NCBI GenBank assembly: GCA_965285935.1
Contig: OZ260661.1
Span: 41,168,001-41,232,000, forward strand
DNA from: Ophelia neglecta
Taxonomy: Eukaryota
Direction of reading: 5' to 3'
DNA length: 64,000 bases
Part shown: in pieces, positions 23,316 through 46,881 of the stretch
How positions within the stretch are numbered: position 1 is the first letter of the stretch
Layout: each line of letters begins with the position of its first letter
Made by a program: the position numbers and the translations under genes
The notes under the pieces: model-generated
What the model was told of the DNA's origin: nothing
Database searches by the model: none
The model's input: the letters and a program-made list of their open reading frames with translations, nothing else

Positions 23316-23927
23316 ATTTCCACAAAATGTCAAGCAGAAATGGTACTGCTCTTCCTTGTCTTCAATTCAATATGGCTTCTTCAATCACGTGATATTCTAC
23401 GTCCAAGGAAGGCTGCAAGGTGGGATTTCGATTTATGTTCATTTTAGGTACTTCGCTTTAAAACATGAACATTTCATCCTTATTAATGATTAATAACCAG
23501 ATGCCGTTATTTGTACATTTTCATATAGGGTTTTTTGTGACTGTCTGCATAAATTAGCATTTTGACAGGGAGACATCAGGGGGTTTCTCTTTATAATCAT
23601 AAAATTGAATGACGTCATTTTCTCCAGCGTGGAATCTCCTGCACAGGCCTCGTGGTGTTGTTTACATTCTTGGTCGATCTAACGTAAGGCTTAAGTCACC
23701 TGCCACGGTGGCATTAAATTAACTTAATTCCTGGAGTACCAAATGATGTGTGCAATGACACGTGGAAGTACTAGCATAACTAATCGCTCGCCATATAAAC
23801 CCTGCGTATTTTCGACCCTTAACCATTATTTATTTTACGTTTAACGGTCGAGAAGCAAAGAAATAGGATCATTGGATTGACAGCGAGCATAGCATCCCGA
23901 CCGTACTACTTATTACACAAACTCAGA
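23316..23927. promoter_or_regulatory. Divergent (head-to-head) promoter region of Rab4 and ARF-like gene 1
   Basis: 612 bp between opposing ATGs. Contains TCACGTGA 23385-23392, kB-like GGGGTTTCTC 23580-23589, CRE TGACGTCA 23610-23617, Fox site TTGTTTAC 23658-23665, GACACGTGGAAG 23757-23768 and TATAAA 23794-23799. Confidence 0.75.
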
Positions 23928-25497
23928 ATGGGGCTCCTTTGGTCGAGCTTATACAGCGTCTTTGAAAGTTTCAATACCACGAACCCAGCCAGAGTCCTTA
24001 TGCTCGGCCTGGATGCTGCAGGTAAGAATTTGTTATCATATTGATATAAAATTTCTGGTTTCTGAAGAAATCATAGGTCATAATAAAGGTCTAGGTTTAT
24101 GAGTTTAATTATTAATGTTGCTATCTTAATTAGTTGACTGAAAGGCTATCATGTTATGAATCGAATCCTTACGAGGGGCTGGGTGGGGGTGGGGGGTGGG
24201 GGGTGGGGGGGTCCTACCTCTTTTTCTAAGGTGGTGACGGTTTTTATAAGTGCTCCGACTAATACTCTAACTAGTATAGGCTACAAAAGCAGTGAGCTGT
24301 GTCTCTCGGCTATAAATGGAAAAGGCAGTCTAAGATATTTCAAAGATAATTCTAATCAGTTCATTATTTCATTTCTTGCATGTATAGAATTATAGAAAAA
24401 GTCCCTCAGTACATTCAGAATTTGGGCTCGACTGTCAGACTCCAGCAACCCCCAGTGATATTTCACTACCTTCATAGCCTATACTAACAAGGTGAATAGC
24501 AATATAAAAAACCGTGGCAGGGGGACAGTAGAGCGAGACTAGATTAAACTGCACTTATGGCATATGAGCTAGAAGATGGATGAAAGCAATAAACTCATTC
24601 TCTATTGAAGATCTTATTTTATTTTGTTGATACATTGAACACATTTTTTGATACTTTTATGATTATTGTCAATAAATGAATCTCAGTTATCTCTTTCATT
24701 ACAATTCAGGCAAAAGCACAATACTGTACAAAGTCAAACTGAATGAGACTGTGTGTACCATACCGACGATTGGGTTCAATGTAGAGACAGTGTCTCCCGT
24801 CAAAGGTGTAACCTTCACTGTGTGGGACGTCGGCGGACAGGAGAAAATAAGACAACTGTGGAAACATTACTACCAAAATACTGATGGTAAGACTTATGAC
24901 AGGCATTACAGGGTACATGTATGCAGAAAAAATACCATATTTCCACTACTTTTTTTTCATGCTGACAACACCAAAAGGTAGAAATATGAAGAGGATATTT
25001 GATATTTTGTTCTGTTTTTAAATATTTGAAATATATATCTAAATTGCAAACCATAAAATGCACTTAAACAATCCACAGGAAACACATGTGTGTATTTAGA
25101 TTTAACTTGAGACTGGTGATTCCCTTTTAGGTACTTTTAATAGTTGAAATCATTTTTATAGGTGAAAGGTAATTACCTCTATGAATTATTTTCAGGTTTG
25201 ATATTTGTGGTAGACAGTAATGACCGAGAGCGTGTGTCCGAGTCCTGGGAGGAGCTGTTTGGAATCCTACAGAGTGACGAGATGAGAGGAGTCCCCGTCT
25301 GTGTCATCGCCAACAAACAAGATATACCTAACGCCATGTCTCCGTCAGAACTCATAGATAAACTCTGTCTACGGAAACTGGACGGTCACAAGTGGCACGT
25401 CCAGGGAGCATGCGCAGTCAACGGCGAAGGAATATACGAATCTATGGAATCACTTTCAAAACTTATCAAAGAATTCAAAAAATCACGGAGATCTTAA
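23928..25497 (+). CDS. ADP-ribosylation factor family small GTPase, copy 1 (190 aa)
   Basis: Exons 23928-24021, 24710-24886, 25196-25497 (GT-AG, phase 1). Starts [15 protein letters not shown]; motifs [32 protein letters not shown]; Gly2 myristoylation site. Confidence 0.95.
24237..24515. mobile_element. Possible degenerate MITE in ARF copy 1 intron 1
   Basis: Nested inverted matches: ACGGTTTTTATA...TAGTATAGGCTA on the left and TAGCCTATACTA...TATAAAAAACCGT on the right. No clear TSD. Confidence 0.45.
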
Positions 25498-26299
25498 GTG
25501 TTAGATCAACCATCCATAATTGAAATTAATGGAGTGTGTTTACATTTATTGATATAATGTACATTTATTTGTTAGGAACACAAAGGTCACAAAACATTGA
25601 AGATTATATTCTTCATTATTTATGTTATTTATTAAATGTTCATTGAGTGAACATATTGTGAGGCATATTGAGGGCTGTCCGTATTTTCATGACAAGAGTG
25701 CAGATCTTTATTACATTTGCATCTAAGAAAATGAACGTAAAGAACACACTCATCCCTCCACGAGATTTAATCAGAGTATGAATGTGTTGGCACTGCTGCA
25801 GTGGAAGTAGAATGCAATCATATCAAAATCATATTAAAATCCTTTACAGTTTTATATTTTGTATTAGAAAACTGGGTATATGTGCAGGAATAAGCAAACT
25901 TTACTTATAATGGGATAAAAAAACCTGCAGACTTGATAATGATGTATATGGTCATAATGTCAATATGTATATAGATTTAGTCTGGATAGCTCATTGTTAT
26001 ATACACATAATATTTATCCATAAAATGTTCACCTATCTATTTAATGTTTATATTGTAATTGTGCAATCATCTGCATCTTCAAATGTATAATATCATTCAC
26101 TAATAAACATATTTGAGCATTTCAATTTGATCTTATTTTTTTTCAGGATTATTGCATCATAAAACATGAGAACACTGTTTTTTACATCTATCACTGCTCT
26201 CTCTGTAAAGGGTAACAAATGTATCTTGGGACTTAAGCATGAATATTTGTGTATGCATAATCTTCATGAGTTGCCAACAAATGTTTGCAAAAGTTTCAT

Positions 26300-45400: not shown

Positions 45401-45929
45401 GGTATTATATTCATGATCGAAGGTGTATGCATAAGACCCACATGGCATATAGCCAGGATGTCTAAACACGTATACCTGAATGACTCACTACCAAATTTAT
45501 AGTAGGCCTATCGGCTGCCTTAAAATACCTTGTGAAGGAGGAACCCCCAACTAATGACGTCATTAGCTCCACCGTGGATCTAACTGCAAAGCTATGACCA
45601 GCAAACCTATTGATTGGGCTAATATACACACAAGGAAAGCCACTAATGGCTAGGACAAGGATGTCAGCAGATATTTAGCTGGTGTAATACTTGATGATGT
45701 GTCGTCTACCACAAGCCAGATTTAGTGTATATTAACGCAAGAAGGCAATATACAAAATAAAACGACATCGAATTTTGCCACTGATAGATCGATAGAGGCT
45801 ACATATACATTTAATAGAGCTGGTTAGTAAACTGATCACTGAAATTCTTTTTTTTTGCGTGGAAAAATTCTTTAAACTGTGCCGGAAAGTCCCTTGTTTT
45901 GGTTTATTTGAAAGAAAGTCCGTGTAAAC

Positions 45930-46881
45930 ATGGGATTTTATTTGTCCAAGCTTCTGGAGTCATTTTATTCCGGAGGTGAGCCGGCCAGAATTTTGATGCT
46001 AGGATTAGACGCAGCAGGGAAGACAACCATTCTGTACAAGGTTAAGTTGAACGAGACGGTCACGTCCATACCGACCATCGGCTTTAACGTGGAGACAGTC
46101 ACACCGTGTAAGGGACTGACATTTACCGTCTGGGACATCGGGGGACAAGGCAAAATCAGACAACTGTGGAAACGATATTACGAGGGGACTAAAGGTAAAA
46201 ATTATATCGCCGCTATACGTGATCTTTATATAGACCTAATTTATTAGTCTTTTAATCAGGCATCGATCTTCATTGACCATTTGTTATACTATATAGGCAG
46301 TTTTCATGTTTAGAAAGATTCAAACAGGTCGATTTTGCAAGCCAGCAACATATATGTTTAGGTCTATTTACAATCAAATCTTGTTTAGATTATCTTTTTA
46401 TTAATTATATCAAAACTCATTAATGCAAAGTGACTGAGTTTTGTATAATGCCAATAATATCTACTGTGGTTGAATGGTGACTAAAGACAAGCCTGCTAAG
46501 AACTATAATAATATTGTTTTTGGTGTGCTTTATATGTTGTATATAAGGGGTAAGTTTATTCTAATCGCCTTTTTTGCCGTCATAGGTCTCCTGTATGTCG
46601 TTGACAGCACAGATACGGAAAGACTGTCGGAAACAAAGGAAGAACTCTTCGCAATTCTAGACAGTGAGGAGATGAGAGGAGTGCCTGCCTTGATAATCGC
46701 CAACAAACAGGACTTACCCAATGCTTTGAGCCCCGCTAAGTTGATAGACAGGTTAAACTTGAGAAATGTCGTTGGGCATAAATGGCATATACAGGGGTCT
46801 TGTGCAACCACTGGAGAAGGGGTGTTTGAATCGATGGAGTATCTCGCGAGAATGGTTAAAGAATTCAATCGGGAACACTAA
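45930..46881 (+). CDS. ADP-ribosylation factor family small GTPase, copy 6 (duplicate of copy 4, 186 aa)
   Basis: Exons 45930-46194 and 46586-46881. Differs from copy 4 at NVVG vs NIVG and FNREH vs FDREH. Confidence 0.93.

Follow-up and report, generated by a model that had tools for sequence, protein, structure and literature searches.

Arl19 was set up as a paralogue group of the ARF family by Vargova et al. (2021, Genome Biol Evol; PMC8358228). It is an ARF1/ARF6-like small GTPase that is present in many invertebrates, has been lost in vertebrates and has no known function. Copies have been tabulated for Adineta (10), Schmidtea (9) and Lottia (2), the two Lottia accessions lying two numbers apart (PMC8358228). 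That account covers proteins only; function, genomic arrangement and regulation are not given (PMC8358228), and our literature search found no paper on the regulation of Arl19 or on the expression of the family. The better known relatives are the canonical ARFs (class I/II Arf1-5 and class III Arf6), for which a single housekeeping gene is expected; C. gigas arf1 appears among the reference genes identified in PMC3191543. Tandem clusters of paralogous GTPases are represented by the IRG, GBP and GIMAP arrays. At the level of control, composite NF-kB and ATF/CRE enhancers occur in the IFN-beta enhanceosome and in the E-selectin and IL-8 promoters; in Golgi stress CREB3 targets mammalian ARF4, and the secretory-pathway genes of Drosophila are driven by CrebA through TGACGTGG-like sites.

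The locus described here lies in a 64-kb stretch of the Ophelia neglecta genome (the window). Six intact, co-oriented ARF-family genes occupy positions 23928-46881 of the forward strand. Each has an open frame of 186-190 aa with canonical GT/AG introns, and every exon matches Pfam Arf (PF00025, E 1e-23 to 1e-31), the matches together spanning HMM positions 3-173 of 174; frames, splice sites and domain thus agree with the first-pass annotation, which had proposed six such genes. Two types are apparent. Type A comprises copy 1 (190 aa; exons 23928-24021, 24710-24886 and 25196-25497, with Pfam Arf on exons 2 and 3), copy 2 (190 aa; 29238-29331, 29971-30147 and 30619-30920), copy 3 (189 aa; 33866-33959, 34416-34592 and 35213-35511) and copy 5 (189 aa; 40835-40928, 41388-41564 and 42183-42481), the last 99% identical to copy 3 and intact in its coding sequence. 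Type B lacks intron 1 and comprises copy 4 (186 aa; 38924-39188 and 39589-39884) and copy 6 (186 aa; 45930-46194 and 46586-46881), which are 99% identical. Copy 2 is a mosaic, with a promoter and exon 1 like those of copy 1 and an exon 2 like that of copy 3. Plankton metatranscriptomes contain spliced transcripts of a relative that bear out both intron positions; their 5' UTR of ~150 nt is consistent with the TATA-to-ATG distances at this locus.

On the basis of tree and sequence signatures we assign the six genes to Arl19, an old metazoan ARF paralogue. In the tree they group with bivalve, chiton, nemertean, rotifer and leech proteins, while Arf1-5 fall across a branch with SH-aLRT 99; together with the Pfam matches, this bears out the suggestion that ARF-fold genes distinct from housekeeping ARFs are involved. 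One member of the clade (P0068, XP_009025112.1) is the published HroArl19, and stretches around (S/T)P(V/C), as well as GHKWHVQ, are common to the array proteins and the published CteArl19 and LgiArl19a/b (PMC8358228). Length (~186-192 aa), a Gly2 predicted to be myristoylated and multiple copies in some invertebrates are further points of likeness. No vertebrate sequence fell in the clade among the sequences sampled for the tree, in agreement with the published loss. The survey of copy number in relatives found two to five Arl19 genes inside ~21 kb in each of oysters, clam, mussel and chiton, and the notion of a lineage-specific expansion must accordingly be dropped. New with respect to the published Arl19 are the six copies in 23 kb, the two anciently split types, one without intron 1, and a family-private promoter module conserved across phyla.

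Array proteins share the fold and Pfam family of canonical ARFs, the DVGGQ and NKQD motifs and the N-terminal myristoyl-helix design; the closest solved structures are ARF1, ARF2 and ARF6 (E 1e-26 to 1e-30 per exon). In every copy the P-loop is intact, DxGGQ and NKQD are kept, and switch I is identical to that of ARF1 (compared with LgiArf1 and CteArf1). Gly2 and Ser6 are retained throughout, compatible with N-myristoylation. Compared with LgiArf1 and CteArf1, the array proteins have a longer N-terminal helix, without the basic residues found in ARF1. Their interswitch (SPVKGVTF) and switch II also differ from canonical ARFs, and all copies continue past the ARF core in a short C-terminal tail that is strongly basic in type A. 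The copies differ from one another mainly in the N-terminal amphipathic helix. From these features we infer that the proteins are GTP switches bound to membranes. They probably work with exchange factors, GAPs and effectors of the ARF type, and different paralogues may be directed to different membranes. Between types A and B dS is saturated and dN is ~0.25; among the coding sequences dN/dS is ~0.15-0.2. The array's coding sequences are under purifying selection, and the signature of an arms race is not supported in them. The absence of a host-pathogen arms race at such values counts against induction. Here the array parts company with the IRG, GBP and GIMAP clusters, arms-race arrays under diversifying selection: it is built on the small ARF fold and not on a dynamin-like or AIG1 domain, and both family and promoter are ancient and widely shared, with no recent lineage-specific burst. 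The likeness to those clusters lies in tandem paralogous GTPase genes with promoters suggestive of signal-dependent transcription.

Where canonical ARFs would lead one to expect a single housekeeping gene, the array presents tandem genes with TATA, CRE and kB-like elements. Kappa-B-like sites and CREs were found at the places proposed for copies 1, 2, 3, 4 and 6. Each old copy has a TATA-type promoter private to the Arl19 family, with a distal module ~150-185 bp upstream of the TATA; the order is a Rel/kB-like site, the palindromic CRE TGACGTCA, exactly 6 bp, and CCA-N3-TGGAWTCTCC, the 3' part of which is itself Rel-like. The modules are on the forward strand. In copy 1 the elements are the kB-like site at 23579-23588, TGACGTCA at 23610-23617, the dyad CCAGCGTGGAATCTCC at 23624-23639 and the forkhead-like TTGTTTAC at 23658-23665; in copy 2, two kB-like sites (28852-28861 and 28881-28890), TGACGTCA (28904-28911), CCAGCGTGGATTCTAC (28918-28933) and TTGTTTAC (28953-28960). 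Copy 3 carries a perfect palindromic kB site, GGGAATTCCC (33479-33488), a CRE matching at 7/8 positions, TGACGTCT (33502-33509), and TGTTTATTTAT (33550-33560); its dyad has decayed. The type B module of copy 4 consists of the kB-like GGAGGAACTCCC (38536-38547), TGACGTCA (38554-38561) and CCACCGTGGATCTAAC (38568-38583), and copy 6 has a copy of it (kB-like site 45537-45548, TGACGTCA 45555-45562, dyad 45569-45584). Copies 1-3 add, as proposed, the box GACACGTGGAAG, nearer the TATA than the distal module, followed by the TATA itself (23757-23768 and 23792-23800; 29024-29035 and 29058-29067; 33656-33667 and 33675-33683). TATA-like boxes of copies 4 and 6 are at 38721-38731 and 45727-45735. A forkhead-like TGTTTAC is present in type A modules and absent from type B promoters. 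Copy 5 is the one gene outside this common architecture, having none of the promoter elements.

Conservation alongside the CRE is strongest for the fixed-spacing CCA-N3-TGGAWTCTCC, not for the upstream kB-like site; this adds an element to the grammar first proposed. CREs are also recognised by factors of the CREB3/ATF6 type, and no factor is assigned to CCA-N3-TGG. Only the kB site of copy 3 is perfect; the other four of the five in the window are one mismatch from GGGRNNYYCC, which speaks against the Rel part. The conserved CGTGGAATCTCC fits, in copy 1, L015 and L018, the RelA/c-Rel consensus HGGARNYYCC, and resembles the IL-8 kB site, GTGGAATTTCC.

These arrangements are rare. TGACGTCA occurs four times in the window, every time in an array promoter. 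Across the whole genome of 762 Mb the composite TGACGTCA-N6-CCANCGTGGA (CCAnCGTGGA) has four occurrences, all of them at the locus (the backwards control gave none); GACACGTGGAAGKACYAGC occurs three times genome-wide, again only here, and TGACGTCATTnnCTCCAnCGTGGA, common to types A and B, is unique to the locus. Self-alignment also confirmed that non-coding DNA does not align between paralogue types: between non-duplicate copies only exons and the promoter stretch shared by copies 1 and 2 (23602-23667 and 28896-28962) align.

The block of CRE and CCA-N3-TGG also precedes Arl19 genes in mussel, clam, four further contigs and the nemertean Lineus, and often a perfect kB site stands 18-45 bp ahead of it; carriers are L003 (two genes), L004, Mytilus, Ruditapes (two genes) and Lineus longissimus, whose promoter reads GGGGATTTTCC, then TGACGTCA TTTGCT CCAACGTGGAATCACC, then TGTAAACA. 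In an alignment of 12 promoters (A2), TGACG, CCA and TGG (>=90%) vary little or not at all. When 241 million metagenome records were scanned blind for the 27-bp pattern, six matched; two of these are located upstream of Arl19 genes, 170-210 bp from the start codon, and in both a kB-like site precedes the CRE by 8-9 bp. A kB site with at most one mismatch is found within 60 bp upstream of the CRE in seven of the 12 homologous promoters and a perfect one in four, against ~3-7% and ~0-1.3% of background 60-bp windows; since the promoters are related by descent and are not independent samples, the nominal binomial P values (~3e-6 and ~6e-7, at rates of 6.5% and 0.6%) overstate significance. In five lineages a perfect kB site occupies the same relative position: in copy 3, L003, L004 and Lineus it is no more than 60 bp from the CRE, and in Pinctada it accompanies other TGACG half-sites. 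The upstream site is missing in Mytilus, Ruditapes, one L003 gene and the Pinctada anchor. The oyster promoters read keep a half-CRE (CGTCA), an ACG(N)TGGAAG box and the TATA, and lack the pair of kB and full CRE. Because synonymous sites are saturated between types A and B and yet the block is retained, we conclude that it is under selection across paralogues, molluscs and a nemertean. The shared promoter grammar of the first-pass annotation is therefore real, with firmer backing than was available to that annotation, whose observations as a whole are confirmed; the interpretation given there, a lineage-specific system induced by pathogens or stress, is partly supported.

The best reading, to which we grant slightly less than an even chance, is signal-dependent transcription, by Rel and bZIP factors, of myristoylated ARF-type switches. 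The module would act as an enhancer tying transcription to signals via bZIP (CREB/ATF/Jun-type) and Rel-family proteins, and expression would come in stimulus-induced bursts, most plausibly upon stress or infection, instead of at a housekeeping level. No RNA run was found to contain the locus, and inducibility is here a prediction from promoter architecture. As in the composite NF-kB and ATF/CRE enhancers, Rel and bZIP sites stand within a few helical turns of each other, upstream of a TATA; the array differs in its additional forkhead-like site and ACGTGG box, and we know of no described enhancer that matches the spacing rule (CRE, 6 bp, CCA-N3-TGG). For the little-studied Arl19 family, lost from vertebrates, the block offers a first testable handle on control.

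The same genes and module could instead be read by a CREB3/CrebA/ATF6-type bZIP, through the CRE and ACGTGG boxes, and serve secretory capacity or Golgi/ER stress and not immunity, the kB-like sites being dispensable or used by another factor. The invariant parts are indeed the CRE and the CGTGG-containing dyad rather than the upstream kB site, GACACGTGGAAG contains an ACGTGG core that oysters keep beside the CGTCA half-CRE, and the secretory pathway is where ARF-family proteins work. CREB3-ARF4 and CrebA-TGACGTGG offer precedents, the former putatively linked to the array by an ARF-family gene, a CRE-type site and a stress-responsive bZIP; however, the paralogue differs, and we know of no counterpart there of the kB-like sites and dyad. 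We nevertheless think this account unlikely: a perfect kB site recurring in five lineages is hard to explain if idle, the CRE is the canonical palindrome TGACGTCA and not TGACGTGG, and the composite is found nowhere else in the genome and is therefore, at this stringency, no general secretory regulon element.

Constitutive expression confined to particular cells or stages (e.g., larval, ciliated, neural or secretory cells), driven by CREB and forkhead factors, with the array raising dosage or partitioning tissues, strikes us as equally doubtful. Purifying selection on the proteins and conservation over phyla are compatible with a basic cell-biological role, plankton metatranscriptomes are the source of the closest transcript, suggesting larval expression in a relative, and type A promoters, L003 and Lineus all retain the forkhead-like TGTTTAC/TGTAAACA. 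That site is missing, however, from type B, and TATA, CRE and kB together are the classic make-up of an inducible and not of a tissue-constitutive promoter.

A separate question touches copy number only. Copies 5 and 6 lie in a 6.97-kb unit (40739-47702) that is 97% identical to the unit at 33770-40733, which holds most of the copy 3 gene, copy 4 and flanks; the two are joined via 5 bp, AAACG. The array thus consists of four old genes and one very recent tandem duplication. Its boundary (33770/40739) sits downstream of the copy 3 TATA, and the promoter of copy 3 was lost from copy 5, which would be either silent or transcribed by read-through from copy 4. Improbably, but at no worse a chance than the two preceding accounts, the second unit might be the other haplotype of the first, set in tandem by the assembler, leaving four genes. 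Divergence of 3% is within the allelic range of marine invertebrates, Logan contigs of the source sample mix variants of both units, none of those listed bridges 40733/40739, and one ending at 40733 continues into DNA found after the second unit. Yet the junction is clean, with its 5-bp filler and no gap (the sole N run is at 53259-53417), contigs matching 40769-41414 begin just past it in three of three runs, as at a real branch point, and repeats break short-read contigs in both scenarios.

That the motif pairs are functionless leftovers or chance, recurring through shared ancestry, is close to refuted: copies 4/6 and 1/2 are related by duplication and one-mismatch kB sites are common (3-7% of 60-bp windows), but the block is kept despite A/B synonymous saturation and in species, including another phylum, with unalignable non-coding DNA, the blind scan recovered Arl19 promoters in two of six matches, and within 762 Mb the composite is confined to this locus.

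Two further motifs had been put forward. GGGACTTTCC is present in copy 6 (45884-45893, minus strand), as is GGGATTTTTC at the corresponding place in copy 4 (38878-38887); the former falls between the TATA-like box and the ATG, from which it is 37 bp away, in what is presumably the 5' UTR, and is probably due to chance because it is not conserved, even in the 97% twin. The supposed ATTTA clusters of the 3' UTRs are at background in the 3' flanks (1-4 observed, 2-3 expected per 600 bp), except in copy 1, where eight occur in 600 bp against 3.4 expected.

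The window is AT-rich animal DNA (GC 33–44%) and carries six plus-strand genes, c1 to c6, between 23.9 and 46.9 kb (23928–46881), with canonical GT/AG introns and open frames of 186–190 amino acids. Six copies in 23 kb constitute a tandem multigene cluster, and the 762-Mb genome contains no other close copy; the next best match to exon 3 is 42% identical. Two types can be recognised. Type A genes (c1, c2, c3 and c5) have three coding exons and two phase 1 introns, one in the glycine codon of the P-loop GK(S/T) and the other in the glycine codon after QNTD; type B genes (c4 and c6) lack the first intron. 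Metatranscriptomes of plankton contain spliced transcripts of a relative; these span both intron positions and have a 5' UTR of about 150 nt.

Single exons or single ORFs served as queries in the database searches; spliced protein models were used for the frame check, alignment, tree and dN/dS. Every exon of both types matched the Pfam family Arf (PF00025; E 8e-23 to 8e-31), and the matches jointly span profile positions 3–173 of 174, that is, the whole GTPase domain; the nearest solved structures are ARF1, ARF2 and ARF6. In the translations of all six copies the motifs GLDAAGK(S/T), D(V/I)GGQ and NKQD are intact, and switch I is identical to that of ARF1. All six also possess Gly2 and Ser6 (an MG....S N-terminus), which suggests that Gly2 is a predicted site of myristoylation in each. 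An Rfam search of the whole window matched no RNA family.

In a tree that held no confirmed Arf6, Arl4 or Arl20 sequence, the six copies group with proteins of about 165–192 amino acids from bivalves, a chiton, nemerteans, rotifers, a leech and a crinoid, and a branch with SH-aLRT 99 splits this group from the Arf1–5 sequences. The copies fall outside the Arf1/Arf4 group and so are not members of canonical Arf1–5; the vertebrate sequences in the tree (Latimeria and Oryzias) sit within the Arf1–5 group. Named close matches come from molluscs, nemerteans, rotifers, an annelid and a crinoid. One protein of the clade, P0068, lies on the same side of the SH-aLRT 99 branch as the six copies and is Helobdella XP_009025112.1, the protein that the Vargova et al. 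2021 supplement (PMC8358228) calls HroArl19. When compared by eye with the sequences printed in that supplement, the window proteins, CteArl19 and LgiArl19a/b were found to have in common KLNE(T/N)V, ETV(S/T)P(V/C) and sequence that ends in (V/I)Q, together with a basic C-terminal tail; Arf1/4/6 and Arl20 from those species lack the signature stretches. Judged by sequence, the array genes belong to Arl19, a family already known. Arl20 was the first candidate, and was ruled out: the published Arl20 has GGR/GSR for GGQ, and long C-termini.

The name Arl19 dates from 2021 and was given to one of two ARF-family groups, both lacking in vertebrates, that had gone unrecognised until then (PMC8358228). 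In that work it is a newly defined metazoan group, positioned close to Arf6/Arl4; a rotifer has 10 copies and a planarian 9, several members have an intron position in common with Arf1, and the group was not recovered as a resolved clade (Vargova et al. 2021, PMC8358228). In the literature searched, Arl19 is named, beyond that paper and its preprint, in one other preprint, and none states a function. The first-pass annotation had called the family lineage-specific, which is wrong, because comparable clusters are present in other species. At least five Arf-family genes lie within 21 kb in C. virginica; of three 189-aa genes in M. gigas, two have recorded Arf matches; the chiton and Ruditapes loci have three Arf-family genes each, Mytilus has two and contig L003, from a relative, has four. 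Inside each species the copies look locally expanded or homogenised.

Alignment of the upstream regions, anchored on the CRE, revealed a promoter module of constant order. A kB-like site is followed 6–21 bp on by the CRE, TGACGTCA, and exactly 6 bp past TGACGTCA stands CCAnCGTGGA(A/T)TCTCC; in type A, TGTTTGTTTAC lies about 20 bp past this element and GACACGTGGAAG, which is found in type A only, about 100 bp after TGTTTGTTTAC. A TATA box is next, and the ATG comes about 100–190 bp later. The CRE is perfect in c1, c2, c4 and c6 and matches at seven of eight positions in c3; TGACGTCA occurs four times in 64 kb, each time in an array promoter. All four matches to the composite TGACGTCA-N6-CCANCGTGGA in 762 Mb are at the array, the backwards control has none, and allowing one mismatch adds one genome match, against one control match per strand. 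The extended proximal box is found three times genome-wide, again always at the array. A genome-wide regulon was ruled out, since composite and box occur nowhere else in the genome.

All of the motifs located by the first-pass annotation were found in place on rechecking. Within the window the kB consensus GGGRNNYYCC is perfect only in c3 and has one mismatch elsewhere. The GGGACTTTCC at 45884 was rejected as a functional site and is treated as chance, because it falls in what is presumed to be the 5' UTR and the 97% identical twin c4 does not have it. The clusters of ATTTA reported in the 3' flanks dissolve into counts expected from composition, with the exception of c1.

The main new result is the conservation of this module beyond the window; the module appears to be unreported so far. 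In blastn comparisons of the window with the contigs of related species exons alone align, yet the module is present. On contig L003 there are two copies, one of them with a kB site that is perfect and palindromic (GGGGATTCCCC), and on contig L004 there is a single copy, in which GGGGAACCCCCC precedes the CRE by 18 bp (start to start). Mytilus has TGACGTCA ATTCCT CCAACATGG; Ruditapes has TGACGATA TTTTCT CCACGCTGG ahead of two genes; Pinctada has GGGACTTTCC followed by TGACG sites, plus TGACGCAG-N6-CCAACCTGGAAGTAAC. In the nemertean Lineus longissimus GGGGATTTTCC is followed by TGACGTCA TTTGCT CCAACGTGGAATCACC and then by TGTAAACA, with a TATA box about 150 bp on. In an alignment of 12 promoters every row has TGACG and CCA, and at least 90% of rows have TGG. 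Promoter blocks of 30–80 bp that can be recognised between phyla are rare.

A blind scan of metagenomes for TGACGTCA-N6-CCANCGTGGAWTC returned six matches. Two, on GenBank-style contigs of 47% GC, lie 170–210 bp upstream of Arl19 start codons, and both have a kB-like site 8–9 bp before the CRE. The other four are on contigs with no Arl19 gene, three of them GC-rich (61–72%, two of which share one sequence) and one of 49% GC; these four look like chance matches. The oyster promoters that were read have a reduced form, consisting of CGTCA, 5–6 bp, GACACG(N)TGGA(A/G) and then TATA, and within 420 bp they contain neither a full CRE nor a kB site. In the chiton Liolophura (contig L007, genes at 3037 and 10001) TGACGTCA or TGACGTAA lies about 400 bp before the ATG, with GCGTGGAT preceding it by about 35 bp and CCACGCTGG following it by about 170 bp; because the pieces are in a different order, the chiton promoters were not counted as having the module.

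In the pairing of kB site and CRE, on which the first-pass annotation had built its grammar, the kB partner is nominally enriched over background and is frequent rather than obligatory. Within 60 bp upstream of the CRE a perfect GGGRNNYYCC is present in 4 of 12 promoters and a site with at most one mismatch in 7 of 12, compared to about 0–1.3% and 3–7%, respectively, of background 60-bp windows. The nominal binomial P values (about 6e-7 for perfect sites and about 3e-6 for up to one mismatch) overstate the case, because the promoters share descent and are not independent. A kB site is absent from the remaining 5 of the 12 homologous promoters; Mytilus, Ruditapes, the Pinctada anchor and one L003 gene lack it. 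The invariant partner of the CRE is the downstream element, the upstream kB site being only frequent. The 3' part of that element reads TGGAATCTCC in c1 and in L015 and L018, and TGGATTCTCC in L003b and L004; these sequences, putatively Rel-like, fit or nearly fit the RelA/c-Rel consensus HGGARNYYCC and resemble the kB site of IL-8.

The five copies in which the grammar had been seen are explained by the history of the array. Comparison of the window with itself revealed one tandem duplication of 6.97 kb, in which 33770–40733 (unit 1, c3 and c4) recurs at 40739–47702 (unit 2, c5 and c6) with 97% identity and a join of 5 bp. This makes c5 and c6 very recent twins of c3 and c4, and dS between the pairs is 0.02–0.08. 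The left boundary of the duplication lies downstream of the c3 TATA box; c5 consequently retains just the ~95 bp immediately upstream of the ATG, with no promoter elements, which is why the grammar was recorded in five copies only. The last polyadenylation signals after c4 (753 and 808 from the stop; region 40637–40835) fall just before the junction at 40733/40739, so transcription of the promoterless c5 would require read-through from c4 or a new start.

The duplication was examined with DNA contigs of the source sample (three contig sets from one sample, over a 5.9 kb stretch). These contigs are mosaics of the variants of both units, and none of the contigs among the matches listed bridges the junction. 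Both observations would be consistent with unit 2 being a second haplotype set in tandem by the assembler, an explanation that we consider unlikely; a genuine tandem duplication is the more probable reading.

The split between types A and B is old, with a dN of about 0.25 and saturation at synonymous sites. Exon 1 has also reached saturation among the type A genes (dS of 1 or more), compared to a dS of 0.13–0.23 in exon 3. The gene c2 is a mosaic: its promoter and exon 1 are c1-like, and its exon 2 is c3-like (94.6% versus 89.7% DNA identity). This pattern fits exon-limited gene conversion among the exons of c1, c2 and c3 (24710–35511). A dN/dS of about 0.15–0.2 within type A indicates purifying selection; fast diversifying evolution of the type A paralogues was not found, and divergence is strong only in the N-terminal amphipathic helix (exon 1), where dN is 0.1–0.5.

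The locus is an Arl19 array whose intact ARF-type switch proteins are encoded behind a selected, TATA-type promoter private to the family. At the core of that promoter is a putative CRE with Rel-like sites around it. Our tentative reading, held with slightly less than even confidence, is that transcription is signal-dependent and induced through bZIP and Rel factors, and that the products act on membranes. Signals would pass through these factors to Arl19 transcription, and genes so controlled would be induced, not housekeeping. The products would work at membranes by way of ARF-type exchange factors, GAPs and effectors, the membrane address being set by the variable N-terminal helix.

The same promoter would also serve a response to secretory or Golgi stress if CREB3/ATF6-type factors acted on the CRE and the ACGTGG boxes; we think this unlikely, and give cell-type-specific expression an equally low standing. 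A chance origin of the motif pairs is very improbable indeed, given a composite confined to four sites in 762 Mb with none for the backwards control, and a proximal box confined to three.

Induction through bZIP and Rel factors can be carried a step further. Arl19 might be an ancient infection- or stress-inducible set of ARF-fold switches of membrane traffic under Rel/bZIP control, with a grammar that predates the split of molluscs and nemerteans, and might thus form an invertebrate counterpart, itself lost in vertebrates, of the inducible GTPase arrays that serve cell-autonomous immunity in vertebrates; we regard this broader proposal as rather doubtful. A search for sequencing runs that cover the locus yielded three DNA-type contig sets and no RNA run, and a search of the literature on oyster and clam relatives, supplements included, found no expression report on the Arl19 family. 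An infection-induced "ADP-ribosylation factor" contig of Bithynia has its best match in a nematode and so cannot be assigned to the family, and a Biomphalaria candidate from the literature is an ArfGAP. The analogy with IRG, GBP and GIMAP arrays, drawn in the first-pass annotation, is conceptual only: the Arl19 array is likewise a tandem multigene cluster, but it has another fold, is under purifying selection and is ancient rather than the product of a recent burst.

A module that is private to one family and contains textbook signal-responsive sites narrows the question of Arl19 function to a few experiments. It makes that function approachable through the stimulus, the factors that bind and the membranes of the paralogues. 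Should the stimulus be infection or stress, Arl19 would represent an invertebrate inducible trafficking-GTPase system with no vertebrate descendant. Should it be neither, the module would still be a clean case of deep cis-regulatory conservation, and the locus would also exemplify tandem duplication with promoter loss (c5) and exon-limited gene conversion.

About 10 kb downstream of the array lies an engrailed-type homeobox gene (57174–59897, plus strand). Its ORF at 59565–59897 (plus strand) contains a homeodomain and the Engrailed C-terminal signature (E 2e-22 and 3e-14), and a 312-aa ORF at 57174–58112 (plus strand) matches the N-terminal parts of engrailed from scallops, limpets and amphioxus at 33–43% identity. 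The window also contains a decayed retroelement (2292–3399, minus strand) with RVT_1 fragments (E 6e-12 and 3e-7) in several broken frames, and a minisatellite (19931–20403) with nested periods of 15, 39, 87 and 156 bp. Both strands of the minisatellite are open, the minus strand reading as peptide repeats, and its only match is a weak one to DUF7951 (E 0.003). A dispersed repeat is present as an inverted pair (27931–28103 and 52101–52275; 83.6% identity over 177 bp), one copy of which lies between c1 and c2; a 37-bp tandem repeat at 37279–37359 has its duplicate at 44243–44331; and the only run of Ns in the window, of 159 bases, is at 53259–53417.

The neighbours of Arl19 in other species were also recorded. 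MCM8 adjoins Arl19 on the opposite strand both in Lineus (contig L012, 12173–21082) and on L004 (11083–14283), and is possibly an old linkage; in two oysters the Arl19 cluster lies instead beside a LolA_2nd_metazoa/PAN-domain gene. Arl19 of Lineus also stands head to head with a second Arf-family gene across a shared intergenic region of 584 bp.
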